Source: Mobula birostris
Taxonomy: Eukaryota
DNA length: 64,000 bases
NCBI RefSeq assembly: GCF_030028105.1
Contig: NC_092374.1
Span: forward strand, 7,277,334 to 7,341,333
Reading direction: 5' to 3'
The translations under genes and the position numbers were made by a program. The notes beneath the pieces are model-generated. The model saw only the letters and a program-made list of their open reading frames with translations, searched no databases and had not been told where the DNA came from. Each line of letters begins with the position of its first letter. The stretch's first letter is position 1. This document shows positions 30,801 to 60,440 of the stretch, in pieces.

Positions 30801-33800
30801 CTCTGCAACTGCATCCTTGACTTCCTCGCTGGAAGACCACAATCTGTGTGGATTGGAAATAACATCTCCTCCTCATTGATGATCAACACTGGTGCATCTC
30901 AGGGTGTGAGCTTAGCCCACTGCTCTGCTCCCTACACCCATGACTGTGTGGTTTGGCACAGCTCAAACGTCATCTATCAATTTGCCGATGACACAAATAT
31001 AGTTGGAAGAATTTCAGGTGGTGACAAGGGGGCGTACAGGAGTGATTTAGATCAGCTTGTGGAGTGGTGTTGCAGCAACAACCTTGTACTCAATGCCAGT
31101 GAAACCAAAGAGCTGACTGTGAACTTCAGAAAGGGAACACGCGCCAGTCCTCATGGGGATAGAAGTGGAAAGGGTGAGGAATTTCAAATTCCTGGGTGTC
31201 AACATCTCTGAGAGTCTATTGTGGCCCCGACACATCAATGCTGTTACAAAGACCACAATACAGTGGCTACGACACAAGGAAATCTGCAGATGCTGGAAAT
31301 TCAAGCAACACACACAAAAAATGCTGGTGAACGCAGCAGGCCAGGCAGCATCTATAGGAACAGGTACAGTCGACGTTTCTGGCCGGGGCCGTTCGTCAGG
31401 ACGAACTGAAAGAAGAGATAGTAAGAGATTTGAGTGGAGGGGGAAGGAGAGGGGGAGGGGCTATATTTCATTGGAGTTTGAGGAGATTTGGTATGTCACC
31501 AAAGACTCCAGCAAATTTGTACAGATGTAACATGGAAAGCATTCTGACTGTCTCCATCTCCGTCTGGTATGGGGGAAATTCCAGACACTCCAGACAGCGC
31601 AGGAATTGAACTCTGAACTCCGACACCCCGAGCTACTGCACAGGATTGAAAAGCTGCAGAAAGCTGTGAACTCAGTCAGCTCCATCATGGGCACCAGCCT
31701 CCCCAGCACCCAGCACATCCTCAAGAAGCAATGCCTCAAAAGGCAGCGTCCATCGTGAAGGATCCCCATCACCCAGGACACGCCCTCTTCTCATTGCTAC
31801 CATCAGGGAGGAGATACAGGAGCCTGATGACACACACCCAACGAGTCAGGAACAGCTTCTTCCCCCCTGCCATCAGATTTGTGAATGGACAATGAACCCA
31901 TGAACACTACCTCAGTACCTTTTTTTGCACAACTTTAAAAAATTTAACTATTGTATATATATAACAACTGCAGTGCAATGAAATGTTCTGTATGGACAAT
32001 AAAACAACTTCAGTGGAAAAAGCCTGCTTGAACTTACCCTATCTGTACCCCTCGTAATTTTGTATAACTCTATCAGATCTCCCCTCAATCTTCTATGTTC
32101 CCGATAACTCAGGTCCTCCAGACCCGGCAACGTGCTTGTAACTTTTCTCTGTACCCTTTCAACTTTATTTACATTTTTGTGTAGTTTGGTGACCAAAACT
32201 GCACACAATACTCCAAATTAGGCCTCACTGATGTTTTATACAACTTCAACATAACATCCATCTTCTTTACTCAATACATCGATTTATGAAGGCCAACGTG
32301 CCAAAAGCTTTCTTTACATCCGTATCTACCTGTGACGCCACTTTCAATGAATTATGGACCTGTACTCTCAAATCCCTTTGTTCTACCACACTCCTCATTG
32401 CCGTACCATTCACCATGTAAGACGGACACTGGTTGGTCCTCCCAAAGTGCAACACCTCACACTTGTCTACATTAAGTTCCATCTGCCATTTTTCAGCCCA
32501 TTTCTCCAGTTGGACCAGATCCCTCTGCAAGCCACGATAGTCTTTCTCACTGTCCACTGCAGCCTCAATCTTGGTGTCATCTGCAAATTTGCTGATCCAG
32601 TTAATCACATTATCATCCAGATGATTGATATAGATGACAAACAATGGACCCAGCACCGATCCCTGCGGGACTCCACTAGTCACAGGCCTCCAGTGACTAA
32701 TCAGATCTCTGAACAAAGTCAGCACTCTGTGCTCGACCTGTGGATGACAGACTTCCCATTCAACCCAGCCTGGTCTCTAATCCTAGTCTTCGTATCAATT
32801 GACCTTACCTTTTAGTACCTCTGATGTGACCCATCACCCAGAGGTGAACTAAAGAAATAAAAAGACGATCATTATTATACTTAAAAACTGAAATCCGTGT
32901 TGTGTACCAAGAAGTGCAGAGTAAGAAAGGTTCATAGACCAAAGGAACTCTGCTCCCTCCCACCACTGAATCCCCTCTTACAGCCCACAGACTCTCTCCC
33001 CCATCACCGACTCTCCCCACGAACTCAATCCCCTCTTATAGCCCACAGACTCTTTCCCCCATCACCGACTGAATCCTCTTCCACATCCCACAGGCACTCT
33101 CCTTCATCTCCAGTTCCCTCCACCCACTGAATCCCCACTCACATCCCACAGACACTCTCCCCTGTCACTGAGTCCCCCACCCACTGAATCCCCTCCCACA
33201 GCCAACACAGTCTCCCATCACAAACTACCCACCGAATCCCTTCCCACATCCCGCAGACACTCCCCCCGTCACTGATTCCCCCCGCCCACTCAATCCCCTC
33301 CCACATCCTGTAGACACTCCCCTATCACTGACTCCCCCCATCCACTCAATCCCCTCCCGCATCCCACACTCTCCCCACCCACAGCCCACACACTCCCCCC
33401 ATCACTGACTCCCCCCACCCACCGAATCCCTCCCATAGCCCACTGACTCTCTCCCCCAGCCACTCTCCTTCATAGAGAGAGACAGTCATCTTCACTTGTC
33501 ACCAGTTCCGCTCACCTTTCTTCTTCCAGGAGACTGCGAGGAGGACACAGACCAGGAACAGGGGAACCAGAACGAGCAGCACATAAATGTGAGAGTTGGA
33601 GTTTGCTGTGAGACAGAGAGCAGCTTTAACACCAGACCTCAGTACAGTGCTTCCATTGTCATTGCACCCTGGCGTTTTCTCCCGACCGATACTCGAGTTG
33701 TAGAGACAGACTGTACAGCCAGACAGACCCTTCGGTCCGATGGTCCATACTGACCAAGGTCATCATCCAAGGTCCTGTTTGCAAGCGTTTGGCCCATAAC

Positions 33801-39800: not shown

Positions 39801-42800
39801 AATTGCTTCCAGAAATTCCATCCATTGATGTTCTGCCATCATCTCTGTCAGAGTTCTTTTCCAATCAATTCTGGCCAACTCCTCTCTCATGCCTCTGTAA
39901 TTCCCTTTACTCCACTGTAATACTGATACATCTGACTTTCGCATCTCCTTCTCAAATTTCAGAATGAATTAGATCATATTATGATCACTTTCCCTCAGGG
40001 TTTTTTTTACCTTAAACTCTCTAATCAATTCTGGTCCATTACACAACACCCAATCCAGAACAGCTGATCCCCTAGTGGACTCAGACACAAACTGCTCTAA
40101 AAAGCCATCTCACAGGACTCTAGAATTTCCCCCTCTTGTAATCCAGCACCAACCTGATTTTCCCAATATGCCTGCATATTGAAATCCCCCATGATTATTG
40201 TAAAATTACTCTTTGGCATGCATTTTCTATCTCCCACTGTAATTAATAGGCCACATCTTTACTACTGTTTGGGGGTCTGTATACAACTCCCATCAGCGTC
40301 CTTCTATCCTTGCAGTTCCTTAGCTCTATCCACAATGATTCAACAACTTCCGACTCGAGAGCATCTGTTACTTATGATTTGGTTTCTTTTTTTACCAACA
40401 GAGCAACGCCACTCCCTCTGCCTCCCTGCCTATCCTTTCGATGCAATGTGTATCCTTGGACATTAAGCTCCCAGCTATAATCTTTCAGCCATGATTCCAT
40501 GATGCCTACAATATCATACCTGCTAATCTGTAACTGTGTTGCAAGTTCATCTACCTTATTCCGTATACTGTGCACATTCAGACACAACACCTCCAGTCCT
40601 TTACGATTTTGTCACACCATGCTCAATTTTTTGGTTCCTAACTTTGTCTGAGGTTTTATGAACATCTGCCTCCACAACCTCTCCACTAACTGCTCTGGCT
40701 CTCTGGTTCCCATCCCCTGCAACTCTAGATTAAACCCCACCGTGCAGCACCTGCGTGTCGGACCGCACAACCCGATTTACATCAGCGGTGCGCAAGTGGA
40801 ACAGGTCAAGAGCTTTAAGTTCCTCGAGGTCAATATCACAAATGACCTGACTTGGTCCAACCAAGCAGAGTCCACTGCCAAGAAGGCCCACCAGCGCCTT
40901 TACTTCCTGAGAAAGCTAAAGAAATTTGACCTGTCCCCTAAAACCCTCACTAATTTTTATAGATGCACCGTAGAAAGCACTCTTCTAAGGTGTCCGTTCC
41001 CATAACTAACGACTCCCCTATCACCACAGTGTGCCTCTTCTCCCCACTTCAGAATGCTGAGGACTCGATCTGAGATATCCCTGACCCTGACACCCGGGAG
41101 GCAACGTACCATCCGGGAATCTCATTGTCACCACAGAACCTCCTGTCCGTTTCCATAAGTAACAACTCTCCTATCACCACAGCGTGCCTCTACTCCCCCC
41201 TTCCCTTCTGAGTCACAGAGGCAAACTCAGTGCCAGAGACCTGATCACTGTGACTTTCCTCTGTTAGGTCATCCCTCTGTACCCCCCCAGCCCCTAGAGA
41301 GTATCCAAAGTGATGTACCTGTTGTTGAGGGGGTGGCCACTGGGGTACTCTGCACTGGCTCCTTAACCCCTTTCCCTTCCTGACTGTCACCCAGTTTCCT
41401 GTGTCCTGCACCTTGGGTGTAACTACCACTCTATGCATCCTCTCCATCTCCCCCCCCATCCTCCTGGATGATCCAGGATTCATCCAGTTCCAGCTCCATT
41501 TCCTTTACCTGATCGTTAGAAGCTGCGGCTGGATGCACTTCTCGCAGTTGTGGTCGTCAGGGACACTGGAGGTCTCCCTGGCTTCCCACATCCCACAAGA
41601 GGAGCACTTCACTATCCTGCCAAGCATCTCAATTGTCTTAGTTCAGCAGATATAAGGAAGAGATGGTAAACCTGAGCTTTTCTTTCCTTTGCTTTCTCTG
41701 AGTGAAGCCTCTCCTCACGGAAGCTTCAAAGAGCTAAAGCCTCGAGATCACCACTCTGACTCTGTCCACTCAGACGACTGCCTCTGTGACGATGGCCCCT
41801 GCTCGTTCCCTGCCTTCCTTTAATTTTCTCCAACTAATCAATCCCAAACACCAAATGGTCACTGGTCAAAGCTCTTTTTCACCACCGTGACCCATTGCTG
41901 CCTTTTACCCTTGGGTAGTGGAGCTGATTGAAGTCACCCCCTCTCAAAACTTCCGGTATGAGGAGAGTTTGAGGGCTCTGGGCCTGTACTCACTGCAATT
42001 CAGGAGAATGATGGGGATCTTATTGAAACCTATCGAATGTTGAAAGATCTTGATAGAGTGGATGAGGGGAGGACATTTCCTATGGTGAGGAGTCGAAGAC
42101 CAGAGAACACAGCCTCAGAATAGAGGCGTACCCTTTTTGAGTGGAGATGAGGAGGAATTTCTTCAGCCAGAGAGTGATAAATCTGTAGAATTCGTTGCCA
42201 CATGTGGCTGCAGAGGCCAGTTCATTGGGTATATTTACTGATAGATTCTTGACTGGTCAGGGCGTGAAGTGATACGGGGAGGAGGAGGGAGACTGGGGCT
42301 GAGAGGGAAATGGATTGGCCATGTTGAAATAGCAGATTGGCCATGTCGAAATAGCAGAGAAGACTCGATGGGCTGAATGGCTTAATTCTGCTCCCATGTC
42401 TCATGGGCACTAGCCTACCCAACATCTGAGACGTCTTCGAAAGGAGATGCCTCAACAAGGAGGTATCCATCACTAAGGACATCCATAACCCAGGACGTGC
42501 CCAGAGAAGACACACACTCAATGTTTCAGGAAGAGCTTCTTCCTTTCTGCTTTACTGGTTTTTCACCTGGAACCTACCAGCCTTCTCCTTCCCACCCTCC
42601 CCCCACATTCTTTATAGGGCCTCTTCCCCTTCCCTCTACAGTCCTGACGAAGGGTTCTGGCCTGAAACGTTGACTGATCATTTCCACGGATGCTGCCCGA
42701 CCTGCTGAGTTCCTCCAGCGTGTTGTGAGTCTTCCTTTCTGCCATCAGGTTTCTGAATGGACAATCAGAGAAGTGAGGACCAACTCCCTTTTTTTCCTTT

Positions 42801-45800
42801 TATCTCTTTTTGTGCAACTTATTTAATTTAAATTTATACATGTAATTTATAATTATCTAATATTTAATTTTAAATTACACATGGACGTTCCCAGGGCAGA
42901 AATGGCTAATACAAGGGGGCATAATTTTAAGGTGATTGGAGGAAAGTATGGGGGGGTGTGAGAGGTAAGTTTTTCTACATAAAGAGTGGTGGGTGCTGGG
43001 GTTGATGGTAGTGGCAGATTCATTAGGGACGTTTAAGCGACTCTTACATAGTCAGATGGATGATAGAAAATGGAGGGTTTTGAAGGGAGCGAAGGGTTAG
43101 ACTGATCTTGGAGTAATTTACAGATGGGCTGAATGGCCTGTACTGTGTTGTATGTTCCATGCTTAACACATAGAGGAGAAAAAAATTAAATGAAGTATGT
43201 AGCGTGAGGGGGAAGAAGGAAGTCTTCCCCACTGGGAGCTGCTAATGAAAGAGTTCTGCACCTTTCGTTGTTCCTTTTACGTGCTGGGAAGTTGGAGATT
43301 CTGCCCTAAATCAGACTCACTGACTCTGAGAACATCCAGTTGTACGACGAGTGAAAAAGCAGCCAGCCAAAGGAGCTCAGTGGGTCAGCCAGCATCCGTA
43401 GAGGAAAAACAACTCTCAGCATTGCAGGTCAAGAGATTCGACAAGTCTTCAGCAAGCACGAGAGGTGAACTGGTCGTCGATTCATTCCCGTCACAAGTAG
43501 CTGGGGAAGTGAAAAACTTTGTTGTCCGAGCAGATCATTTCATCACATCAGTACACTGAGGCAGTAGAGGGGAAAACACCAGCAGAGTGCAGAATAAAGT
43601 GTGACAGTTACTGAGAAAGTGCAGTGCGGGCAGACAGTGAGGAGCAGGGCCATGGTGAAGTGGGGTGCCACTGTAGCACAGCCGTTAGTGTGACACTATT
43701 ACAGCTCGGGGTGTCGGAGTTCAGAGTTCAATTCCTGCACCGCCTTGTACGCTCTCCCTGTGACCGCGTGGGTTTCCTCCAGGCGCTCCAGTTTCCTCCA
43801 CGGTCTAAGGGTGGACCGGCTCGTAGGATGTACCAGCTGATGGGAGCGGGTCTTTGATTTTGCAGCCTGTTTCACAGAGGCAGGGAGAAGTGTAGACAGA
43901 ATCCACGGAGGGGAGGCTGGCTTCTGTCCTGATCAATGTCACAGGTTGAGCCCTGTCATCGTGTCCTGTCTGCCTCCTCCCCCTGACATTCCGCAGAATC
44001 ACAATTCTGAGATTGATGTGATTATTGGACTGTAGTTTATTTTGCTCTCCTTCAGTTTCTGTTTTCTTTCTTGTTGCCGATTGGTGGGCTGGGGTTCTAG
44101 GGGGGCGATATATTGTTTTTTGTGTGAGTGAGAGAGTTGGGAGGGTGTTTGAGGTTTGTGAGTTTCTTTCTTTTTAATTTTCGTGTAGGAGGGGGGTTTA
44201 CATCTTTTCTTTTAATGAATCCCATGGTTTTTCTGTACATCATGGCTATCTGGAGAAGATGAATATGAGAGTTGTATTCTGCATGAATACTTTGACAATA
44301 AAATGAACCTTTCAACCTTTTTCCACAGATGCTGCCCGACCTGCTGAGTTCCTCCAGCATTTTGTGTGTGTTGCTCTGTATCTCCAGCATCTGCAGATTT
44401 TCTCCTGTTTATGACCATGGTTGTTCTTGGCAAATTTCTCTACAGAAGTGGTTTGCCATTGCCTTCTTCTGAGCAGTGTCTTTACAAGATGGGTGATCCC
44501 AGCCATTATCAGTACACTTCAGAGATTGTCTGCCTGGTGTCACATAACCAGGACTGGTGATATGCACCGGCTGCTCATATGACCATCCACCACCTGCTCT
44601 CAGGGCTTCACGTGACCCTGATCGGGGGCTAAGCAGGGGCTACACCTCGCCCAAGGGTAAAGTGAAGGCTAGCAGAGGGAAGGAGTGTCTTACACCTCCT
44701 TTGGTAAAGACGTATTTTCACCCTGCCACCCTACAATACATTGCAATACGTATTAATAAAAATCTGTAAACTGCAATAAGAAATATCTATCAAATAATTT
44801 TAAATTAGGTAAGTTGCACAGAAAGAGAGAACAAAAAGTTAGAAAAAAGGAGACAAAGTTAATGGACCTCACTTTCTGATTGTCCATTCAGAAACCTGAC
44901 GGCAGAAAGGAAGAAGCTCTTCCTGAAATGTTGAGTGTGTGTCTTCTCTGGGAAGCTTCCTGATCCTCCGTTAGAACTCCACTCATTCCTCCCAGGCTCA
45001 GGCAAGGCCCCGCCGGGGGGCCCGTTGAAGGTCTGGGGGCCACCCTGTGTGAAGGACTGCCTGAGATGGAGATGTGGTGGGGAAACGGAACTCATTACCA
45101 GCCGAGACTGGGAGTGGCCAACATAACACTCAGCCCCAGAGTCTGGACACATAATACAATGGGTTCTTTTCCGGATCTGATCTACAGTCAGATCTCACTC
45201 GGGGACAGATGATAAACCCAGGGTGGGGGTTGATTAGAGAAAGGATAATGGTAGCAGGCTTCCTATCTTCCCCTCCCCCCCCACTCCCAAAACTCTCCCC
45301 ATACCCTGCAGAATGTGTCAATGGTTTCTTACCTGGTCTGACCTGCAGCTGGATCTCACTCTGGAACACATGGATAAATGGGGGTTTGACGTGGTCTCTG
45401 TAGGATGAATAATTATGGCTCTTTTTCCTGAACGCAGCCAGACACAAGTAGCTGTGACTGTCGTTCACACTCAGCTGCTTTATCCTGATCGAGGCGTTTC
45501 CCCACTCTGGGTCCCCGACGAGCTCGTACCGAGTCACTCCGTTTTCCGCTGCCCACGATCCATTTTCATAACGCCTGAATGTGACGATGTGTCGGTAGGG
45601 ATCCTTCCTCATCCACGTCACCGTGTGTGCGGTGAGGTTCTGCGGAGGCCGTGTGAACTCACAGGGTAACGTGGCCGAAGCTCCCTCGGTTCCAGTCATC
45701 ACAGAGACACTCTCGCCGGGAGCTGAGGGAAGGACAGGTGCCAGAATAAATCAGTTAACCACCACCAAACATGTTTAAACACTGACAAAATTTCCAGCCT

Positions 45801-48800
45801 ACAAAATAACAAAAACTCCCCACAGCGCCCTCCCAAATGAAAACACCCCCACATGTGTCTGACTAATTGCAAACCATTCCAACAAGAGAAACTATTTCGA
45901 ACATAAAACAGTCCCATCGGGCAGGAGGTAGAGAAGCCTAAATCTCACACCACCACGTTCAGGAACAGCTAATTCCCTTCAGCCATTCAGTTGTTGAACC
46001 AATTGACACCAACACTAATCAGGAGAGTGTAGCAACACTCATCAGTACAGTGTAACACCAATCAGGATAGTGTAACAACACTAATCACTACAGTGTAACA
46101 ACACTAATCAGTAGAGTGTTACAACACGAATCAGTACATTCTAACAACACTAGTCACAACGATGTAACAACACTAGTCTGTGCAGTGTATGAAGGTTGTA
46201 AGTTATTAAGTCAATTCAATTCAATATAATTCAGTGAAATAATACTAGTCACTAAAGGCAACAAAACAAATCACTACTGTGTAACAACACTAACAACAGG
46301 AATTCTGCAGATACTGGAAATTCAAGCGACACACATCAAAGTTGCTGGTGAACGCAGCAGGCCAGGCAGCATCTCTAGGAAGAGGTACAGTCGACGTTTC
46401 AGGCTGAGACCTTTCGTCAGTCGAAGACGAAGGGTCTCGGCCTGAAACGTCGACTGTACCTCTTCCTAGAGATGCTGCCTGGCCTGCTGCGTTCACCAGC
46501 ATCTTTGAAGTGTAACAACACTAATCAGCAGAGCGGAAGTCCTGTCCTGAGCCTTGTGGCTCATCAGGCCGGTGCTTATGCCGGTTTCTGTGCCATGAAG
46601 CGACTGAGAGTATGAGACTCCCCCCCCCACCCCCACGGATAGGACGGCAGTCTATCGCGAGGTTAACCCCAGCATTTTTGCCCGTACCCATTTTTCGGCT
46701 GGGTAGACTGGAGCATTGTGTGGTTAAGTGCCTTGCTCAAGGACACACGCTGAATCAGTAGAGTATCACGGCAATAATCGGAATACTGTAACAACACTAA
46801 TCACTGCAGTTTAAAAACACTGGTCAGTACTGTGTGACAACACTAGTCAGTACACTGTTACACCAAAAATCACAACAGTGTAACAAAATGAATCCCAACA
46901 GTGTAACTACACTAATGGTGACAGTGTAATAACACTAAGCAGTACAGTGTAACAAGAATAATCAGTACAGAATTAAAACACTAGTCAGATCAGTGCAACA
47001 ACTAGTCCGGACAGGTAACAACATTAAGTAGTACTGTGTAACAGCACTAATCACTAGAATGTAACAACACAAGATACAGTGTAACAACACTAGTTAGTAC
47101 AGTGTAACAACACTAATCACTACAGGTAACAACATTAATCAGTACAGGTAACAACATAAATCACTACAGAGAAACAACACTAATCACTATCGTGTGACAA
47201 CACTAGTCAGTACAGTGTAACAACACTAATCACTACAGTGTAACAACACTAGTCACTACAGGTAACAACATTAATCAGTACAGGTAATAACATAAATTGC
47301 TACAGAGTAACAACACTAATCAGTGCAGTGTAACAGCATTAATCACAAGAATGCAACAACACTATTCAATACAGTGTAACAACACTAGTCAGTAAAGAGT
47401 AACAACACTATTCAGTACAGTATAAAACACTAGTCAGTTCAGTACAACTAAGAATTACCATGTAACATCACATATCAATACAGTGTAACAACACTGAACC
47501 ATACATTGTAACACTAGTCACTGCAGTGTATCAATGCTAGTCAGTACACTGTAACAACGCAAATCATTACAGTGTAACAATATAAATAACTGCAGTGTAA
47601 CAACACTAATCAGAACAGTGTCACAACACTAGTCTCTACAGGTAACAATACTAGTCAGCACAGTGTAATAACATAAATCAGTACAGTATAATAGCACGAA
47701 TCAGGACATTGTAACAACACCAGTTAGTACAGTGTAACAACACAAATCACTACAGTGTAACAAGACAAATAGCTACAGTCTAAAAATGCTCGTCACTACA
47801 GTGGAACAACACTAATCAGTACAGTGTAACAACACAAGAGTAAAGTACAACACTAATCACTACTCATGTAAAACATGAGTCTTTGCAGAGTAACACTAGA
47901 AACGAGTGTAACAACACTAATCAATACAGTGTAACAACACTAGTCATTATGTGTAGCAACACTTTTCCGCACAGCGTAATAACACTAGTCAGTACAGTGT
48001 AATGACACCAGTTACGACAGTGTAACAAACTAATCAGTACAGTGTAACAACACTACACAGTAGACTGTAACAACACTAATCAATACAGTGTAACAACACT
48101 AATCAGTACAGTGTAACAACACTATTCAGTACAGTGTAACAACATTAATTAGTACAGTGTAACACTAGAGGCAACAGTGTAACAGCGCTAATCACTGGAG
48201 TGTAACAAACCTATCAGTAGAGTGTAACAACCCTGATCACTACAGGATAACGATACTACTCAGTACAGTGTGATAACACAGTTCACTGCATTGTAACGAT
48301 CCCAAACACCACATGGTCACTGTTCAAAGCTCTTTTTCACCACCGTGACCCATTGCTGCCTTTTATCCTTGGGCGGTGGACCTGATTGAAGTCCCCTCCT
48401 CTCAAAACTTCTGATATGAGGAGAGTTTGAGGGCTCTGGGCCTGTACTCACTGAAATTCAGAAGAATGATGGGGATCTTATTGAAACCTATTGAATGCTG
48501 AAAGACCTTGATAGAATGAATGTGAAGAGTATTCCTATGGTGGGGAGTCTTAACCCAGAGAACACAGCCTCAGAATACAGGGTGCATTGTCGTTAGCAAA
48601 TTTAATTAGCAGATTGGAGCTGTGGCTGTCGACACAGTCATGGGTATACAGAGAGTAAAGGAGGGGGCTTAGTACACAGCCCTGAGGGGCACCTGTGTTG
48701 AGGGTCAAAGGGACAGAGGTGAGGGAGCCCACTCTTACCACCAGCCAGCGATCTGACAGGAAGCAGCATAAAATCCAGGACCAATGGGCTCCGGGACAGC

Positions 48801-51800
48801 TTCTTCCACCAGGCCATCAGAATGCTTAATTCATGTTGACACTACTGTGTTTCTATGTTATACTGACTATCCTGTTGTACATTATACATTATAAATTACT
48901 ATAATTGCACATTGTACATTTGAAGAGATGTAACGTAAAGATTTTACTCCTCATACATTTAAAAGATGTGAGAAATCAGGTCAGTTCAATTTTAGAATGG
49001 AGATGAGGAGGAATTTCTTCAGCCAGAGAGTGACCAATCTGTAGAATTCGTTGCCACGTGTGGCTGTGGAGGCCAGTTCAGTGGGTATATTGAAGGCGGA
49101 GGTTGATAGATTCTTCACTGGTCAGGGCGTGAAGTGATACGGGGAGGAGGAGGGAGACTGGGGCTGAGAGGGAAATGGATCAGCCATGTTGAAATAGCAG
49201 AGAAGACTCGATGGGCTGAATGGCCTAATTCTGCTCCCATGCCTCATGGTCTTATGGGCACTAGCCTACCCAACATCCAAGACATCTTCAAAAGGAGATG
49301 CTTCAACAAGGAGGCGTCCAACACTGAGGACCCCCATAACCCAGGATGTGCCCTCTTCTCATTGCTGCCATCAGGCTGGTGGTACAGGAGCCTGAAGTCA
49401 CACACTCGATGTTTCAGAAACAGCTTCTTCCCCTCCACTATCAGATTTCTGAATAGACATTCAACCCATGAACGCTACCTCATGACCTTTTTTCTCCTTT
49501 TGCACGAATTATTTAATTTAACTTTTTATATAATTGGGCATCGTAAATTGTTCATTGTAAATTGTTCATTGTAAATTGTTCACTGTTAATTGGTCATTGT
49601 GAATTGTGGTGGGTTCAATCGATGGGTTTCTGGGTGGTGGGGCTCATTGGGCCGGAAGGGTCTGTTCCGTGCGGTGTCTCTAGATTAATAAACAAGTAAA
49701 TAATGAGGTCAAGAGTGCATCGTATCGTACTTGGGGACCACTCAGTCGTTATAACTGCAGGATAAAAGCTGTCCTTCAGCCTGGTGCTCCGTGCATCCAG
49801 GCTGTTGTATCTTCTGCCCAATGGGAGAGGGCAGAAGAGAGGATGACCAGAGTGGATGGGAGTTGATTTTGCAGCCTGTTTCACAGAGGCAGGGAGAAGT
49901 GTAGACAGAATCCACGGAGGGGAGGCTGGCTTCTGTCCTGATCAATGTCACAGGTTGAGTCCTGTCATCGTGTCCTGTCTGCCTCCTCCCCCTGACATTC
50001 TGCAGAATCACAATCGGGATTCGGATAATCTCACTGGCTTGTGTTTTGTGCAGCAGTACATTGCAATCATCATCATCAGTGTGTGCTGTGTTGTGTGATG
50101 TGGGCAATCACAGTCTCTGAACCATGACTAACACACACAAAATACTGGAGGAACTCAGCAGGCCAGGCAGCATCTATGGAGAAGAGTAAACAGCTGGCGT
50201 TTCAGGCTGACCCCTCCATCAGGACTCATTTTCATTTTAAAATCTTTTTTTATTAATTATTATTGAAGATCAACAAAAAATACATTAATCAAGTCAACAT
50301 GTCAATGTGTACAATGAGAAATTAAATGATCAAATAACTGATTAACAAAGCTAAACAATAATAATAAGAAAAAAAAATGTTAAAACTAATTTTTTGGAAA
50401 AAAGAAAGGAGGGAAAAAGAACCCCTACTAACTAAAACAAAATGAAATCCCTACTAACAAAAAAACCTCCAAAAAAACCCATTGGGAGCACAACCACGGA
50501 GCTATACACCATACAAGCTTCCATAAAAGATAACACATCAATCCACCAACTCAACGCCATTTACACAAGAATCAGAAGGGAACCATCTTAATTAACGCAA
50601 ATCAAATGATAGTAGCGGGCAAAAGAACCCCACCTTTTCTCAAAGTCAAATCAAGGATCAAAAGTTCGACTTCTGATTTTTTCCAAACTAAGACATAACA
50701 TCACCTGAGAGAACCATTGTATCAAAGTGGGAGCAGAGACATCTTTCCACTTCAATAAAATAGCCCTTCTGGCCAATAATGTGACAAATGTAATTACATG
50801 TTGGTCTGATATAGAAATACCAGGAATAAATTGAGGGATTATACTGAACAAAAGTGTCAATTTATGAGGTAGTTTATTTTGCTCTCCTTCAGCTTCTGTT
50901 TTCTTTCTTGTTGCTGATTGGCGGGTTGGGGTTCCAGAGGATGATGTATTGTTTTTTATGTGAGGGAAGGAGTTGGGAGGGTGCTTGAGGTTTGCCAGCT
51001 TTTTACTTTTTTACTTTTACTTTTCATGTGGGACGGGTGTTGACGTCTTCTTTCATAATGAATCCCATAGGTTTTCCGTAGATCATGGCTATCTGGAGAA
51101 GATAAATATCAGAGTTGCATTCTGCGTGCATACTTTGACAATAAAATGAACCTTTCAACCTTTTTCCATAGATGCTGCCCGACCTGCTGAGTTCCTTCAG
51201 CATTTTGTGTGTGTTGCCCTAGATGTCCAGCATCTGCAGATTTTCTCCTGTTTATGACCATGGTTGTTCTTGGCAAATTTTTCTACAGAAGTGGTTTGCC
51301 ATTGCCTTCTTCTGGGCAGTGTCCATACAAGATGGGTGACACCAGCCATTATCAGTACTCTTCAGGACTGGTGATATGCACCGGCTGCTCATACGACCAT
51401 CCACCACCTGCTCTCAGGGCTTCACGTGACCCTGATCGGGGGCTAAGCAGGGGCGACACCTCGCCAAAGGGTAAAGTGAAGGCTAGCGGAGGGAAGGAGA
51501 GTCTTACACCTCCTTTGGTAAAGACGTATCTTTACCCTGCCACCCTGTTATACATTGCAACACATATTTATAAAAAAACCGTAAATTACAATAAGAAATA
51601 TATATCCACATGTATAATTTTAAATTAAATAAGTAGCACAAAAAGAGAGAAAAAAAGGAGAAAAAGTGAGCTGGTCCTCACTTTTCTGACTGTCCATTCA
51701 GATATCTGATGGCAGAAAGGAAGAAGCTCTTCCTGAAATGTTGGGTGTGTGTCTTCTCTGGGAAGCTTCCTGAGCCTCCGTTAGAACTCCACTCATTCCT

Positions 51801-52970
51801 CCCAGGCTCAGGCAAGGCCCCGACAGGGGGCCCATTGAAGGTCGGGGGGCCACCCTGTGTGAAGGACTGTCTGAGATGGAGATGTGGTGGGGAAACGGAA
51901 CTCATCACCAGCCGAGGCTGGGAGTGGCCGACATAACACTCAGCCCCGGAGTCTGGACACATAATACAATGGGTGCTGGAGATCCCGACCCATCCCTGAA
52001 CACTGCAGAAGATGCCGAGATGGTGTGGGAGAGAGCAACGGCCTCTGTGGACCTGCTGGAGTCCATAGTGGGTGGGGGACAGGCCCCTCCCATTGGTGCT
52101 GCCTTCCTCTGTTGCTCAGTGCTGCCTTCCTCTATTGCTCAGTGCTGCCCTCCAGTGTTCACTTAGTGAGAGACAAGCTGGACCAGGACAACATCCAATC
52201 TACCATCAAGCTACAAGCCAGAACACTCAGGAACTTGGGCTATATTATGTATTTTTGTGACTGTATGTTTTTCTGCTATCGTAACGATGTGTACCGTGTG
52301 CTGTTGCTACTCTGCTTTACACTTTGTCCCTGGAGAAACTCTGTTTTGTTGTGCTGTATGCATGTGTGGCTGATTGACAATTAAACTTGAATTTGAATGT
52401 GGCGACAGGTTCTTTTCCGGGTCTGATCTACAGTCAGATCTCACTCGGGGACAGACGATAAACCCGGGGTGGGGGTTGATTAGAGAAAGGATAATGGTAG
52501 CAGGCTTCACTTCTCCCCCCCAGCCCCCCAACTCCCAAAACCCTCCCCATACCCTGCAGAATGTGTCAATGGTTTCTTACCTGGTCTGACCTGCAGCTGG
52601 ATCTCACTCTGGAACACATGGATAAATGGGGGTTTGACGTGATCTCTGTCGAATGAATCATCATGGTTCATTTTCCTGAACTCAGCCAGACACAGGTAGC
52701 TGTGACTGTCCTCCACACTCAGCTGCTTTATCCTGATCGAGACGTTTCCCTGCTCTGGGTCCCCGACGAGCTCGTACCGAGTCACTCCGTTTTCCGCTGC
52801 CCACGATCCATTTTCATAACGCCTGAATGTGACGATGTGTCGGTAGGGATCCTTCCTCATCCACGTCACCGTGTGTGCGGTGAGGCTCTGCGGAGGCCGT
52901 GTGAACACACAGGGTAACGTGGCCGAAGCTCCCTCGGTTCCAGTCATCACAGAGGCACTCTCGCCGGGAG
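3846..52970 (-). CDS. Spliced IgSF V-set transmembrane receptor with tyrosine-motif cytoplasmic tail (SIGLEC15/PILR-like V domain; 5'-partial, leader not in window)
   Basis: Eleven exons, all with AG acceptors and (except the terminal exon) GT donors. Phases chain into one open frame if all are included: [178 protein letters not shown]. Assembled manually; no transcript evidence. Confidence 0.82.
4626..6097 (+). mobile_element. Solo LTR-like element containing an expanded G-rich minisatellite
   Basis: TGTAC...TTACA termini; TSD TACG (4622-4625)/TACA (6098-6101). Removal restores the CR1 tail ttctacgtcttac. Orientation tentative. Confidence 0.6.
4805..5760. repeat. G-rich minisatellite of interleaved ~19-21 bp units (ggagagacggggagtcgga / ggagagacggggaggacggt)
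   Basis: Direct inspection; explains the spurious long ORFs at 4757-5889. Confidence 0.95.
6920..7190. repeat. (tgaagac/tgaagat)n short tandem repeat
   Basis: Direct inspection. Confidence 0.95.
7633..7683 (-). CDS. Cytoplasmic exon 5 (51 nt, phase 1-1), VTYETG motif
   Basis: Acceptor tgctcttgttgcacag, donor AATG|gtgagc. Encodes [17 protein letters not shown]. Confidence 0.75.
7705..8130. repeat. CT-rich polypyrimidine low-complexity tract
   Basis: About 420 nt almost entirely C/T on the plus strand. Confidence 0.9.
8378..8455 (-). CDS. Cytoplasmic exon 4, copy a (78 nt, phase 1-1), [12 protein letters not shown]-like motif
   Basis: Acceptor tctctctccttacag, donor CGAG|gtacag. Encodes [26 protein letters not shown]. 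An in-frame alternative donor GGAG|gtgaga would end the exon at 8414. Confidence 0.75.
9198..9275 (-). CDS. Cytoplasmic exon 4, copy b (78 nt, phase 1-1), CTYASI ITIM-like motif
   Basis: Acceptor ctctcctccttacag, donor GGAG|gtacag. Encodes [26 protein letters not shown]. The donor position is inferred; homology to copy a decays shortly after it. Confidence 0.7.
9330..10130 (-). mobile_element. Rex1/Babar-like LINE fragment (left flank of the exon-3 duplication), with small CR1 insert ~9570-9730
   Basis: [26 protein letters not shown] and [11 protein letters not shown] remnants. Confidence 0.75.
11021..11074 (-). CDS. Cytoplasmic exon 3, copy a (54 nt, phase 1-1), PLYDNI motif
   Basis: Acceptor tctgtgttacag, donor AAAG|gtaaac. 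Exon sequence identical to 13977-14030. Confidence 0.78.
12170..13080 (-). mobile_element. Rex1/Babar-like LINE fragment (junction copy of the duplication)
   Basis: ORF 12314-12742 ([31 protein letters not shown]) and ttcaatgaa-type tail. Confidence 0.8.
13977..14030 (-). CDS. Cytoplasmic exon 3, copy b (54 nt, phase 1-1), PLYDNI motif
   Basis: Acceptor tctgtgttgcag, donor AAAG|gtaaac. Encodes [18 protein letters not shown]. Confidence 0.78.
15125..16330 (-). mobile_element. Rex1/Babar-like LINE fragment (right flank of the duplication)
   Basis: ORFs 15270-15635 and 16129-16329 ([24 protein letters not shown]). Confidence 0.8.
16481..16630. repeat. 55-bp minisatellite, ~2.7 copies
   Basis: gacg(a/g)agtct recurs at 16511, 16566 and 16621; all three minus-strand frames contain stops. 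Confidence 0.85.
17396..19095 (-). mobile_element. CR1 LINE ORF2 RT + 3' end, degenerate
   Basis: [54 protein letters not shown]; (catagaaa) tail at the left. Confidence 0.92.
19096..21310 (+). mobile_element. CR1 LINE ORF2 (linker + RT + 3' end), 5'-truncated
   Basis: ORF 19101-20321 ([26 protein letters not shown]), then FADD and [10 protein letters not shown] segments with stops and frameshifts. Confidence 0.93.
21311..22320. mobile_element. Two abutting CR1 fragments (minus ~21311-21695; plus ~21696-22320)
   Basis: [15 protein letters not shown] linker on minus; KKAYGVL..LDHTW and 3' tail on plus. Confidence 0.8.
22445..22497 (-). CDS. Cytoplasmic exon 2 (53 nt, phase 2-1)
   Basis: Acceptor ttggttcttttctcgacag, donor TCAG|gtactg. 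Encodes [17 protein letters not shown]; sits in an island of non-repeat sequence. Confidence 0.78.
23040..24760 (-). mobile_element. Rex1/L2-like LINE 3' fragment hosting the solo LTR
   Basis: (aatcag)n tail; [50 protein letters not shown]. Confidence 0.8.
23209..24098 (+). mobile_element. Solo LTR (890 bp)
   Basis: TGTTAC...GTAACA inverted termini; exact 4-bp TSD GTGC (23205-23208, 24099-24102); AATAAA near 24032; interrupts a LINE 3' tail. Confidence 0.85.
25322..25790 (-). mobile_element. CR1 3' fragment of a young subfamily, nearly identical to 39225-39760
   Basis: [38 protein letters not shown]; catagaaa tail. Confidence 0.9.
27955..28110. repeat. ~30-bp minisatellite (cacccctggcactccttctctgcccc)
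   Basis: About five copies by inspection. Confidence 0.9.
30140..31265 (+). mobile_element. Rex1/Babar-like RT fragment interrupted by a Penelope-end insert (30488-30689)
   Basis: [53 protein letters not shown]. Confidence 0.85.
32809..32848 (-). CDS. Cytoplasmic exon 1 (40 nt, phase 1-2)
   Basis: Acceptor tctttttatttctttag, donor AAAG|gtaagg. Encodes [13 protein letters not shown](R) and supplies exactly the phase shift the 53-nt exon needs. Confidence 0.8.
32950..33480. repeat. Degenerate C-rich tandem repeat filling the intron between the TM exon and cytoplasmic exon 1
   Basis: Recurrent ccactgaatcccctcccacatcccacagacactccccc units. Confidence 0.85.
33516..33605 (-). CDS. Stalk + transmembrane exon (90 nt, phase 1-1)
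   Basis: Acceptor ctctctgtctcacag, donor AAAG|gtgagc. Encodes [30 protein letters not shown]: about 21 hydrophobic residues, then a KKK stop-transfer, with no charged TM residue. Confidence 0.9.
34135..37020 (-). mobile_element. CR1 LINE near-complete ORF2 (APE endonuclease + RT), degenerate
   Basis: [32 protein letters not shown]; [24 protein letters not shown]; (ataaccat) tail. Confidence 0.93.
37350..41830 (-). mobile_element. CR1 LINE with 5'UTR/ORF1 remnant and deleted ORF2, carrying nested fragments (CR1 39225-39760, Rex-like ~40745-40990)
   Basis: [14 protein letters not shown] endonuclease start; [10 protein letters not shown]; ORF1-type WVTVRKGKG and zinc-finger remnant near 41500-41620. 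Confidence 0.82.
45333..45722 (-). CDS. Ig V-set domain exon, proximal copy (390 nt, phase 1-1)
   Basis: Same acceptor and donor as the distal copy, open frame, canonical Cys/Trp/Cys. 17 nt differences from the 52581-52970 copy by manual alignment. Confidence 0.93.
46010..48298. repeat. ~23-bp degenerate satellite (agtacagtgtaacaacactaatc), ~2.3 kb, with inserts; short homologous stub at 53255-53335
   Basis: Direct inspection; each unit contains the inverted repeat agtgt..acact. Confidence 0.93.
46338..46506. repeat. ~80-bp near-perfect inverted repeat derived from Penelope-like termini
   Basis: 46338-46418 is the reverse complement of 46425-46506 with few mismatches; loop of about 6 nt. 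Confidence 0.9.
52581..52970 (-). CDS. Ig V-set domain exon, distal copy (390 nt, phase 1-1)
   Basis: Acceptor cctgtccttccctcag, donor CCAG|gtaaga. Encodes [66 protein letters not shown], with B-strand Cys, C-strand Trp and the DxxxYxC motif. Confidence 0.93.
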
Positions 52971-55936
52971 CTGAGGGAAGGACAGGTGCCAGAATAAATC
53001 AGTTAACCACCACCAAACATGTTTAACACTGAGAAAATTTCCAGCTTGGAAAATCATAAAAACTCCCCTCAGCACCCTCCCAAATGAAAACACCCCCACA
53101 TGTGTTTGATTAATTGCAAGCCATTCCAACAAGAGAAACTCTTTCGAACATAAAATAGTCCCATCGGGCAGGAGGTAGAGAAGCCTAAATCTCACACCAC
53201 CACATTCAGGAACAGCTAATTCCCTTCAACCATTCAGTTGTTGAACCAATTGACACCAACACTGATCAGTAAAGTATAACACCAATCAGTACAGTGTAAC
53301 ATCACTAGTCAGTACAGTGTAACAACACTAATTCATACAGGGTAGTTTTTTTCTTTTTCAGCGGTTTGATCGAGGTATGACTACACAGGCACGTGGACGT
53401 CAGCGAGTTAGACTGGCAGGCAGAGTTCAAAAAGAAGACAGCTTTATAGAGTGGGTACCAGAGTGGAGGGAGTCAGAGTAAGAAGGCTTTGGCTAAACAG
53501 AGCTTTGGTGATAACGCGTCGAAGCGAGGTAAGTTACTTGTGTAGAATAGAAACAGGAAGCAAGTCTGTGAGGCCAGTGTTCTGTACTGGGTGTCAGATG
53601 TGGGAAGTCCGGGAGACTCTCAGCCTCCCGGACAGCCACGTCTGCAATAGGTGTGTAGCCCCCCCGGCCAGCCTCAGGGTCGCTCGGCTCGCTGTCATCT
53701 AGGGAAACAGCCCTTGGCCCCGCCAAACCGGGTAATTAGTTTGTGTGGATGCTGTGTGATGTACCCCACCCCACCCAAATAACAGACAATACACCAGATA
53801 CAATTAAATGATTTACAGTTTATAGATATTACGGGAACTATATAATTAACAGAGAATAAAATATAAAAGGAAAATAAAAGGTGCCACACTTATCAAAGTT
53901 CAATCACTTCGTGCACAAACAGTTGGAGCTCAGGACCCTTCTTCTTCACCCTGCGACCCCTCGGACCACCTCGAAAGGCTGCCTGGGACCAACAACGGTG
54001 GTCGACCAGATGCTCCACGTGAGTCCGTCTCCATCTCCTCCCCTCGCCGAATGCCCCGCTCGGGGTCCGACCCCGTTAGCAGACTCACAACACCTGGTCC
54101 ATCCTCTGTCTCTTTCTCTCGCCTTTTACCCTAAAACCCCGCGCATACAATATCTTACAGACACACCAAAAGCATAACAACTATCCCTATTGGTTCATAA
54201 CATCTTCTTAACAGTAACGTGATCCAAACAAACTGCTAGCAAACTTGTTATGCTAACTGTTATCAGCAGTTAACATAACAAAGGATCCATTTTAATTAGA
54301 TTACACAGTGACGTAAAAAAAAGAAACCCCTTACAATCTCCCCCCACCAAATAAAGTCATGTCCTCATGACTTCTAAGTAACTTGCCAACCAGTCCTACA
54401 GACACAGAAATCCATCCAGATACACACAGTGACATTGCTCCCCAAACAGTGGACTTTCCCCCGTCCACGGGCACTACATAGGCCAACCTATCTGAGAGCT
54501 TCCTGATCCTCCGAGACCTCCGTACCCCCTCACCTAAACCCAAAAGGCTCAGACACTACTAGGGATACCTCGGGCCTACTTGCCAACTCCTCTCTCACTC
54601 AGGCCACCATTACAACTCAGAGCCCCCTGTCCTGTGTCCGGGACCCCGCCTCTCCTCCTTCCTGATCCTGCCGTAACTCAGACTGTCCACAACTAGCCCT
54701 CCCCACTACATCTGACTCAGTGGGAGAAGGGCCAAAGGTCTCTTCCTCAATGACGGGGAAGTTAGCGAAAGGCAGCATGTACCACATGTCCAGCACATCA
54801 TCCTTCGAATCCGTATTCGTCCTCATTCCCTCGCTCGGTAGCTGCTGTTTGAGTTTCTCCAAACTGAAACATTTAGCCGGGGCTACCCCTTCAGCCTCCT
54901 GCAGTCGAGACGTCAGCTTCTTCGGGCACTCCTTCAGCTGTCGCCACAGCCTCAGCAGTTCTGACTCAGGGTTCTTGGCCATCTCAATCTGGCACGCAGT
55001 TACCCCACCAGCTTCTTCTACCGTGACCTGAAAAGTAGCGGTTAAAGGATGTTCAGCCTCCAGTTTTTACTTCCTGATGACTTCTTCCAGGTCAACTTCC
55101 AGTTTTTCCACTTCATTTGAACTGTCAACAGTTGTCTTCAGGTTCCTTTCAAGCGTCCGCCTCCCTTTTCTGAGATCTGTCCTCCATTTCTTCACCTCCT
55201 CGGGAGTGTAGTCAAACTCCCCTCCCTGGGCTCTCAGTTTTCTGTTGGCCTGAGTCAAAACACTTCCTTGATCTTCCCCCACTTGTAAGTCTTCCAATCT
55301 TTTCTGGATCGACGTCTTGAGTTTCTGCTGATCCCTTCGAAGGTGAGTCATTGTTTCTTCTGGCTGGATTAATTATCAGTACACGATCGCAGTGTCGGCT
55401 CGGAATTCTGTAGCTCCTTCTCCACGTTGACAAGCGTGAATTCCAAGTCTGCAATGGTCGTCCCACAAGTGCGGCACTCAGTCTCCAGCCGGCATTTCTG
55501 AGCACTCAGTTCAGTGGTGCAAATCCCCTCTCTTCCCTATGTCTCATTCAGATTGACGACCTGGGTTTCCATCCCCAGGTCCACCACCATCTATTCCAAC
55601 ATCAGGAAGCTCAACTGGTATGTCGGGTCATTTTTCTGACGTTGCACCAAACTGCTCTGCCCAAAAACTCCTCCACCTTTGACACTTCACTTCCGTCGCC
55701 CGGGCTCAGCCACTCGTCTCGCCTCATAGTCCCCCCAGGCGAATCCAAGCTCTAGGCGGTCATCCACATATGTCAAAACCCCACACACCTTCACTTCCCC
55801 CATGGTCTTCCTCATGTCCCGCGGGAAGGATGCAGGGGCTCCGGATATGCCCTTGGGCATCTTTTCGGATCGGAAGAATCTTAGGGAACTAATAACAGCT
55901 GCCTTTAGCTCAACAGCCGCACTCCTCGGGATCTGG

Positions 55937-58206: not shown

Positions 58207-60440
58207 CGAACAACAGGAATTCTGCAGATGCTGGAAATTCAAGCAACACACATCAAAGTTGCTGGTGAATGCAGCAGGCCAGGCAGCATCCCTAGGAAGA
58301 GGTACAGTCCACGTTTCAGGCCGAGACCCTTCGTCAGGACTAACTGAAGGAAGAGTGAGTAAGAGATTTGAAAGTTGGAGGGGGAGGGGGAGATCCAAAA
58401 TGATAGGAGAAGACAGGAGGGGGAGGGATGGAGCCAAGAGCTGGACAGGTGATTGGCAAAAGGGATACGAGAGGATCATGGGACAGGAGGTCCGGGGAGA
58501 AAGACAAGGAGGGGGTGGGGACCCAGAGGATGGGCAAGGGGTATATTCAGATGGACAGAGGGAGAAAAAGGAGAGTGAGAGAAAGAATGTGTGTATAAAA
58601 ATAAGTAACAGATGGGGTACGAGGGGGAGGTGGGGCACTAGCAGGAGTTAGAGAAGTCGATGTTCATGCCATCAGGTTGGAGGCTACCCCGATGGAATAT
58701 AAGGTGTTGTTTGCCCAACCTGAGTGTGGCTTCATCTTTACAGTAGAGGAGGCCGTGGATAGACATGTCAGAATGGGAATGGGATGTGGAATTAAAATGT
58801 GTGGCCACTGGGAAATCCTGCTTTCTCTGGTGGACAGAGCGTAGATGTTCAGCAAAGCAGTCTCCCAGTCTGCGTCGGGTCTCGCCAATATATAAAAGGC
58901 CACATCGGGAGCACCGGACGCAGTATATCACCCCAGTCGACTCACAGGTGAAGTGTTGCCTCACCTGGAACAACTGTTTGGGGCCCTGAATGGTGGTAAG
59001 GGAGGAAGTGTAAGGGCATGTGTAGCACTTGTTCCGCTTACACGGGTAAGTGCCAGGAGGGAGATCAGTGGGGAGGGATGGAGGGGACGAATGGACAAGG
59101 GAGTCGCGTAGGGAGCGATCCCTGCGGAAAGCAGAGAGTGGGGGGGGGGAAGATGTGCTTAGTGGTGAGATCCCATTGGACGTGGTGGAAGGAGGTGGAG
59201 GGTCCCTGTCTCTTGCAAAAACACCATCCCCTTCTCGCAATTCCTCCGTCTCCGCCGCATCTGCTCTCAGGATGAGACTTTTCATTCTAGGACGAGGGAG
59301 ATATCCTCCTTTTTTAAAGAAATGGGCTTCCCTTCCTCCACTATCAACTCTGCTCTCAAACGCATCTCCCCCATTTCACATACATCTGCTCTCACTCCAT
59401 CCTCCCGCCACCCCACTAGGAATAGGGTTCCCCTGGTCCTCACCTACCACCCCACCAGCCTCCGGGTCCAATATATTATTCTCCGTAACTTCCGCCACCT
59501 CCAACGGGATCCCACCACTAAGCACATCTTTCCCTCCCCCCCCCTCTGCATTCCACAGGGATTGCTCCCTACACAACTCCCTTGTCCATTCGTCCCCCCC
59601 ATCCCTCCCCACTGATCTCCCTCCTGGCACTTATCCATGTAAGCGGAACAAGTGCTACACATGCCCTTACACTTCCTCCCTCACCACCATTCAGGGCCCC
59701 AAACAGTCCTTCCAGGTGAGGCGACACTTCACCTGTGAGTCGGCTGGAGTGATATACTGCGTCCAGTGCTCCCGATGTGGCCTTTTATATATTGGTGAGA
59801 CCCGACGCAAACTGGGAGACCGCTTTGCTGAACACCTATGCTCTGTCCGCCAGAGAAAGCAGGATCTCCCAGCGGCCACACATTTTAATTTCACATCCCA
59901 TTCCCATTCTGACATGTCTATCCACGGCCTCCTCTACTGTAAAGATGAAGCCACACTCAGGTTGGAGGAACAACACCTTATATTCCGTCTGGGTAGCCTC
60001 CAACCTGATGGCATGAACATCGACTTCTCTAACTTCCGCTAATGCCCCACCTCCCCCTCGTACCCCATCTGTTACTTATTTTTATACACACATTCTTCCT
60101 CTCACTCTACTTTTTCTCCCTCTGTCCCTCTGAATATACCCCTTGCCCATCCTCTGGGTCCCCGCCCCCCCCCCCCCGCTTGTCTTTCTTCCCGGACCTC
60201 CTGTCCCATGATCCTCTCATATCCCTTTTGCCAATCACCTGTCCAGCTCTTGGCTCTATCCCTCCCCCTCCTGTCTTCTCCTATCATTTTGGATCTCCCC
60301 CTCCCCCTCCAACTTTCAAATCCCTTACTCACTCTTCCTTCAGTTAGTCCTGACGAAGGGTCTCGGCCTGAAATGTCGACTGCACGTCTTCCTAGAGATG
60401 CTGCCTGGCCTGCTGTGTTCACCAACAACTTTGATGTGTG
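58207..60440. mobile_element. Penelope-like element (RT C-terminus + GIY-YIG endonuclease) with inverted partial duplicate
   Basis: Plus arm IPFSQFLRLRRICS..VIYCVQCSRCGLLYIGETRR..RFAEH..GMNIDF; mirror arm on minus 58207-59190; 12-bp TSD ctgttagtggga (58195-58206)/ctgttagcggga (60441-60452). Confidence 0.92.

Follow-up and report, generated by a model that had tools for sequence, protein, structure and literature searches.

Introduction

Receptor families in which activating and inhibitory paralogues are clustered, surface loops are variable and duplication or conversion is frequent include the NITR of teleosts and the KIR and LILR of mammals. The paired Siglecs (Siglec-11/16 and Siglec-5/14) are also clustered activating and inhibitory receptors of the immunoglobulin (Ig) type, and their extracellular exons are described as near-identical or exchanged between paralogues by gene conversion (PMC5701461). 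In Siglec-15 the V-set domain has the cysteine pairs C64-C142 and C95-C104, R143 is essential and forms a salt bridge to sialic acid, and contacts to N-acetylneuraminic acid are made by V150, R153, Y154 and E155 within the segment D149-S156 (PMC10264397). A lysine in the membrane segment of Siglec-15 binds DAP12 (PMC7226832, a paper confined to teleost Siglec-15). This study concerns two closely similar V-set exons, here called A and B, on the reverse strand of a 64,000-nucleotide (nt) stretch of the genome of the manta Mobula birostris (NC_092374.1, positions 7,277,334 to 7,341,333), together with the receptor gene that contains them. The whole of this stretch is referred to as the window.

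Both exons are of the type that encodes the second V-set domain (V2) in a family of receptors from rays and skates, in which V2 follows a first V-set domain (V1) and precedes the membrane. The explanation that best fits the data, to which a probability of about 0.7 is given for all of its parts taken jointly, is that A and B are tandemly duplicated membrane-proximal V2 exons of a single Siglec-15-like inhibitory receptor gene with a tail that carries an immunoreceptor tyrosine-based inhibitory motif (ITIM).

Results

Host gene of exons A and B

Exons A and B are Ig V-set domains. Both match the Pfam V-set profile PF07686 above the cut-off (Table 1), and the V-set hallmarks C20, W36 and Y91-L-C93 are present in each. 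When B, A, the transmembrane exon and eight cytoplasmic exons are joined they make a single open frame, all on the same strand and with AG/GT borders throughout. No leader, V1, transmembrane or tail exon was found between B and A, and none was found in the 11 kb upstream of B. Because no such exon separates them and the downstream exons continue in the same frame, the twins are both internal to a single receptor gene of inhibitory type. Two separate genes were also considered and rejected, since no transmembrane, tail, leader or V1 exon lies between A and B. The two exons would presumably both be spliced into one mRNA, with B preceding A.

Each exon sits in its own unit of a tandem duplication. 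In the part of the two units that could be reliably aligned, the flanking introns of A and B differ by 5.4% on the 5' side (15/277), by 6.0% in the proximal 3' part (10/168) and by 7.9% overall (119/1514). A minisatellite of 23 nt (consensus CAACACTAATCAGTACAGTGTAA) begins some 290 nt 5' of both V2 exons; it is about 1.7 kb long beside exon A but 88 nt beside exon B. This repeat marks the borders of the units and may have mediated an unequal crossover. Since the two units are 5-8% apart, have insertions that are not shared and have a counterpart in a gene model of Mobula hypostoma with two such domains in tandem, the twin exons are not a duplicate made in assembly, and an assembly or haplotype artefact is ruled out.

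Comparison with described receptors

An exhaustive profile search returned 192 relatives. The closest, as named by a word-indexed search, come from M. birostris, M. hypostoma, Hemitrygon akajei, Hypanus sabinus, skates, Narcine and Pristis. A conserved 38-mer, searched for as an exact pattern in metagenome contigs, gave no match. The typical build of a family member is V1, then V2, then a transmembrane segment, followed either by a long tyrosine-rich ITIM tail or by a short tail combined with a lysine in the membrane; the family is one of paired activating and inhibitory receptors of rays and skates. Two V2 domains in tandem occur in several gene models (P0001, P0151, P0153 and P0152).

Of the described receptors, Siglec-15 (human SIGLEC15, PDB 7zoz, and its fish orthologues) is like the ray family in several respects. 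V1 of a manta paralogue (P0160) matches the human Siglec-15 V-set with E=1e-14, and this match includes the Cys-Arg-Val-Glu motif with its arginine and the extra cysteine pair. The best single-domain match of V2 in the PDB is likewise the Siglec-15 V-set (7zoz, E=4e-7), and the membrane-segment lysine is kept in the activating members of the ray family. However, Siglec-15 has a C2-set second domain at the place where exons A and B encode a second V-set, and the manta gene has an ITIM tail, a transmembrane segment without lysine and repeated V2 exons, in a ray family that has expanded to many paralogues. Exons A and B also lack the C95-C104 pair, and in a phmmer alignment to 7zoz the residue of A and B that stands opposite R143 is Leu94. 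As this leucine is invariant in 47 of 47 V2 domains from rays and skates (the alignment used for the family-wide comparisons below), V2 is not a canonical binder of sialic acid. The same phmmer alignment places V2 residues 100-107 opposite D149-S156 of Siglec-15, and a loop opposite the sialic-acid contacts of Siglec-15 may be taken as a lead for a role in recognition.

The polymeric Ig receptor is also a chain of V-set domains from phase 1-1 exons, and it is matched in the PDB with E=3e-6. However, its domains are old and diverged rather than recent exon duplicates, and the likeness is one of sequence and architecture. With the paired Siglecs the manta family has in common the clustering of activating and inhibitory Ig-type receptors, and exchange between paralogues would fit the mosaic sharing of states among manta V2 exons described below. 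The manta case differs in that it involves a non-lectin second V domain and exons duplicated inside one gene, and in that any exchange there was judged from the protein sequences of the paralogues. Unlike NITR, KIR and LILR, the ray family has a domain lineage derived from Siglec-15.

Differences between the two exons

An ungapped comparison of A and B over 390 nt found 17 nucleotide differences (4.4%) and no insertions or deletions. Fifteen of the differences are nonsynonymous and fall in 13 codons (5, 21, 28, 73, 76, 86, 96, 100, 101, 103, 104, 106 and 107), and the other two are synonymous (L92 and D109). Eight of the 17 are clustered within 41 nt, and a stretch of 133 nt has none. All of these counts had been given in an earlier prediction made from the sequence of the window (the original prediction), and all were correct on recount. 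The same prediction had described the cluster as a swap from basic and aromatic to acidic residues in the F-G loop. Over residues 95-112, exon A has a net charge of +4 and exon B one of -1, a swap of five units. The two exons also differ in their N-x-S/T sequons, of which A has five (N28, N53, N75, N86 and N103) and B has two (N53 and N75), and 3 of the 13 residue differences gain or lose an N-glycosylation site, one of them within the loop.

The position of the cluster in the fold was taken from an AlphaFold2 model of the exon A domain, built on 47 relatives, with a mean predicted local distance difference test (pLDDT) score of 84. The model has the nine-strand V-set fold, with strands at residues 6-11, 16-21, 29-39, 42-50, 56-58, 65-70, 75-80, 90-99 (F) and 116-128 (G), and when it was used in Foldseek the top matches were all generic V-set domains. 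The FG loop comprises residues 100-115, of which 103-108 are floppy and of low confidence. Given these limits of strands F and G, the cluster (residues 96-107) covers the end of the F strand and the FG loop, which agrees with the placement in the original prediction.

Under a uniform model, the probability of at least 8 differences in some window of 41 nt is 0.005, that of a gap of at least 133 nt is 0.012, and that of at least 7 changed codons within 12 is 0.0007, though the window sizes were picked post hoc and these values are thus somewhat optimistic. The 133-nt stretch is the longest identical run across 1.9 kb of reliably aligned duplicate DNA, and the three longest identical runs of that alignment all overlap the exon. 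The coordinates of the exons, of the duplication units and of the other parts of the gene are collected in Table 1.

Table 1. Positions in the window of the twin exons, their duplication units and the downstream exons of the gene
Feature	Position	Strand	Description
V2-type V-set exon A	45333-45722	-	Downstream copy in the transcript; 390 nt; phase 1-1; AG/GT borders, open frame; Pfam V-set E=7e-15
V2-type V-set exon B	52581-52970	-	Upstream copy in the transcript; 390 nt; phase 1-1; AG/GT borders, open frame; Pfam V-set E=7e-15
Cluster with 8 of 17 A/B differences	45394-45434	-	Codons 96-109, end of F strand and FG loop; exon B partner 52642-52682
Identical stretch of 133 nt	45505-45637	-	Equals 52753-52885 in exon B; codons 29-72, strands C, C', C'' and D; most conserved segment in the family
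Tandem duplication unit A	41841-48298	-	Contains exon A with adjoining intron; 23-nt minisatellite at 46010-46189 and 46787-48279
Tandem duplication unit B	48299-53363 (end approximate)	-	Contains exon B with adjoining intron; short run of the 23-nt minisatellite at 53257-53344
Transmembrane exon	33516-33605	-	Same gene as A and B; no lysine inside the membrane span
Cytoplasmic exons (8)	3846-32848	-	32848-32809, 22497-22445, 14030-13977, 11074-11021, 9275-9198, 8455-8378, 8291-8262 and 3877-3846; AG/GT borders; tail with ITIM VIYAAV

Relationships among paralogues

Both A and B have closer relatives elsewhere in the family than in each other. B is closer to the manta proteins P0159, P0171 and P0160 than it is to A, and the loop of A is identical to that of the second such domain of M. 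hypostoma P0152 (Table 2).

Table 2. Residue differences between V2 domains, for the whole domain and for the loop
Comparison	Whole domain	Loop (residues 95-115)
A vs B	13/129	7/21
B vs P0159	6/122	3/21
B vs P0171	8/129	2/21
B vs P0160	9/128	2/21
A vs M. hypostoma P0152 domain 2	6/129	0/21

At 10 of the 13 sites that differ between A and B, both states are found among other paralogues, and in the four-gamete test, applied to six V2 domains of M. birostris, failure was seen for 5 of 10 informative pairs of sites. The A-type loop (SHNYSSY) is conserved in two Mobula species and the B-type loop (NHDDSFD) is common to neighbouring genes. Because all 21 loop residues are the same in M. hypostoma, the loop of A is conserved rather than still diversifying. 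The shared states, the closeness of B to other genes and the four-gamete failures together indicate that the loop cluster is exchanged or old family variation and not fresh divergence of a sister pair, and the mosaic of loop states suggests gene conversion or old variation as its source. To speak of "twins" is misleading, since the variants are common to other paralogues. The original prediction had said that descent of the cluster from a single conversion tract of another paralogue would count against it. The mosaic sharing, scored on proteins, goes part of the way towards such an origin, as does the loop of B with two differences from each of two manta genes.

Codon 73 (45503-45504 in A and 52751-52752 in B) has a history of its own. 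It reads TGG in exon A and CAG in exon B, whereas it is CGG in all of the RNA contigs from paralogues and encodes Arg in other Mobula proteins, which points to a single CpG that was hit twice, independently in the two copies.

Constraint on the framework

The identical core of the two exons (codons 29-72) is the most conserved segment of the family alignment, in which K39, P41, V46, T47, F48, W56, E59 and L67 are invariant. All 13 residue changes between A and B lie outside the 49 positions that are invariant or nearly so (P=0.0013), and the nonsynonymous rate of the framework is lower than the rate of the introns (p=0.03). Since these 49 positions are unchanged and the framework rate is below that of the introns, both copies have been constrained since their divergence, a substitution pattern that points to purifying selection on both exons. 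Decay as pseudogenes is disfavoured because the changed residues avoid conserved positions.

The 133-nt core has about 31 synonymous sites, and the probability that none of them changed is 0.09-0.19 under selection alone. Gene conversion is therefore not needed to account for the identity, though it may have contributed, and it was rejected as a necessary cause. Over the whole exon two synonymous differences were seen where 4.7-6.8 are expected, a shortage that is suggestive at most. The original prediction had offered purifying selection or gene conversion for the framework; the former is backed by the conservation of the core in the family and by the 49 unchanged positions, and the latter is unneeded.

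The C-C'-C''-D part of V2 is nearly invariant from skates to manta rays, which is unusual for a V domain, as C'-C'' is normally variable. This hints at a conserved interface on that face of the domain.

Variability of the loop and tests of diversifying selection

The stretch that follows the motif YLCLxEF is hypervariable in both sequence and length across the family. All 13 of the residues that differ between A and B are at positions that vary in the family, and the family entropy at these sites is 1.36 bits compared with 0.48 at other sites (P=3e-6).

The original prediction explained the contrast by diversifying (positive) selection on an FG loop in contact with a ligand. In this account a demand for new binding specificities after the duplication would have driven the charge swap, while the framework was held constant. 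Several results lean in that direction. For the pair A and B the Nei-Gojobori method gives, over the whole exon, 0.052 nonsynonymous differences per nonsynonymous site (dN) and 0.024 synonymous differences per synonymous site (dS), with a ratio (omega) of 2.2. The nonsynonymous rate of the loop (7/40) is weakly above the intron rate (119/1514, p=0.04) and above the exon-wide synonymous rate (2/86, p=0.005). The five-unit charge swap, the three gained or lost glycosylation sites, the hypervariability of the loop in the family and the alignment of residues 100-107 with the part of Siglec-15 that contacts sialic acid (PMC10264397) would also fit this explanation.

However, the tests are nonsignificant or post hoc. 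The whole-exon omega has a Fisher p of 0.38, and dN is about equal to the 5.4% divergence of the 5' intron, as the original prediction itself had pointed out. The loop was picked post hoc for both rate comparisons, the differences are not independent events, and omega in the loop is 1.4, a value that fits no constraint. The variants are mostly common to other paralogues, so they are not independent new substitutions in the A/B pair, and the loop of A is unchanged between two Mobula species. With Leu in place of the Arg143 of Siglec-15, contact of V2 with a ligand is putative, and the top loops of an internal domain may face the preceding domain instead. Diversifying selection on the loop was thus not demonstrated, and it is considered an unlikely cause of the difference between the two exons.

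Transcript evidence

Transcript-type contigs from four runs were aligned to exon A with 100 nt on either side (45233-45822). Coverage is limited to 45332-45724, the depth is zero in both introns, and the exon borders are the exact points at which the contigs break. The overhanging ends of the contigs continue into the end of a V1 domain (TAVLTDLSV), into the transmembrane exon (NSNSHIYVL), into the first cytoplasmic exon with the transmembrane exon skipped (HLWLMGRIR, in another species) or into an alternative end (GQKLLPS*). The zero depth in the introns, the breaks at exon borders and the joined loose ends indicate that these contig sets are transcripts and that V2-type exons are spliced at these borders. 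The contig loops KKNHDYSFD and KMNHDYSFD have paralogue letters. The best DNA run contains 0.91 of the sampled words of exon A, and RNA-type contigs of the same organism have loops identical to those of the M. birostris proteins P0159 and P0171, which fits M. birostris as the source of the window.

The form in which V2 is joined straight to the first cytoplasmic exon, found in the run from another species, matches the M. birostris model P0160, and a transcript of this kind could possibly encode a soluble form. The alternative terminal exon ending in GQKLLPS* was considered as a part of the gene in the window, but the window does not contain its sequence, and it is therefore assigned to a paralogue.

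Other observations in the window

One of the cytoplasmic exons is duplicated (14030-13977 and 11074-11021) within a direct repeat of about 2.96 kb, and both copies are in frame with intact splice sites. The C-terminus of the M. hypostoma gene model P0152 continues into a repeat-derived tail (LARLSSLAMENDALITLSSESSNAS) that resembles the open reading frame at 1677-2219 on the reverse strand, at the 3' end of the gene in the window. This resemblance suggests that P0152 may come from the orthologous locus and that the end of the model may be an annotation artefact. At 58638-60042 there is an inverted repeat of 512 nt (58680-59191 and 59489-60000, 93% complementary) with two open reading frames bearing a GIY-YIG-like motif (LLYIGETRRRLGDRFAEHL), which may be head-to-head copies of a Penelope-like retroelement.

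Discussion

The explanation favoured in this study begins with a tandem duplication of the membrane-proximal V2 exon within one inhibitory Siglec-15-like receptor gene. The V2 framework, chiefly strands C to D, is strongly constrained across the whole family while the FG loop is hypervariable, and the contrast between A and B is one instance of this pattern. The constrained sites of A and B stayed identical under purifying selection. The FG loop carries variants that are largely common, in mosaic, to other paralogues, and these variants would come from older paralogue lineages or would have been moved by gene conversion. A few private point changes, such as the two CpG hits at codon 73, were added on top of them.

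Several observations weigh against this explanation. The letters that are diagnostic of A or B themselves were not detected in the contigs of the four runs, where position 45504 is G in all, though contigs drop rare variants. The junction from B to A was not seen in these contigs either, and searches of databases with proteins of 210-865 amino acids found no annotated protein with the exact sequence of A or B. It may be that the gene in the window is silent, or that exons A and B are silent or skipped. In addition, the 5' part of the gene is beyond the window, so its own V1 is not within these 64 kb, and the mosaic sharing was scored on proteins only, a level at which recurrent substitution is inseparable from gene conversion.

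The transcript observations are what a different account of the locus would predict, namely that the FG loop is neutral and unconstrained and that one or both exons are skipped or silent relics that remain intact through a young duplication and the slow mutation rate of elasmobranchs. A loop omega of about 1, the low model confidence of the loop and its varying length across the family are in keeping with this account, as are the missing contigs and annotated proteins. However, contigs can show presence and not absence. The 13 changes avoid all of the 49 conserved positions and the framework rate is below the intron rate, which shows constraint on both copies, and the splice sites and reading frames are intact. 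P0152 of M. hypostoma also joins two such domains, the second of which has the loop of A. Relic exons with a neutral loop are therefore judged improbable, and the reading of A and B as duplicated V2 exons of one inhibitory receptor gene is preferred.

The FG loop may contact a ligand, and selection rather than relaxed constraint may maintain its diversity. A wider and speculative proposal, which is put forward as a long shot, is that the V2 FG loop is a diversified recognition site. Rays would then assemble their innate repertoire from many paired activating and inhibitory Siglec-15-derived receptors that differ in this loop, would shuffle its variants through conversion, and would stack differently charged and glycosylated V2 domains in one chain through exon duplication.

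The pattern of differences between A and B is real, but it is rather ordinary for immune gene families, and the contrast between the twin exons is ordinary as a case of selection as well. Exons with variable loops in a clustered, duplicating and probably converting family of immune receptors are a known kind of pattern. The family to which the gene belongs is the more interesting object. A literature search found no paper on a Siglec-15-like family in cartilaginous fish, and the ray family appears to be undescribed within the searchable literature. The data presented in this study suggest a ray-specific expansion of Siglec-15-like receptors that varies by means of a rigid scaffold with one hypervariable loop, a mosaic of loop variants and duplication of exons within a gene, and such variable receptors that do not rearrange may be of interest to comparative immunologists.

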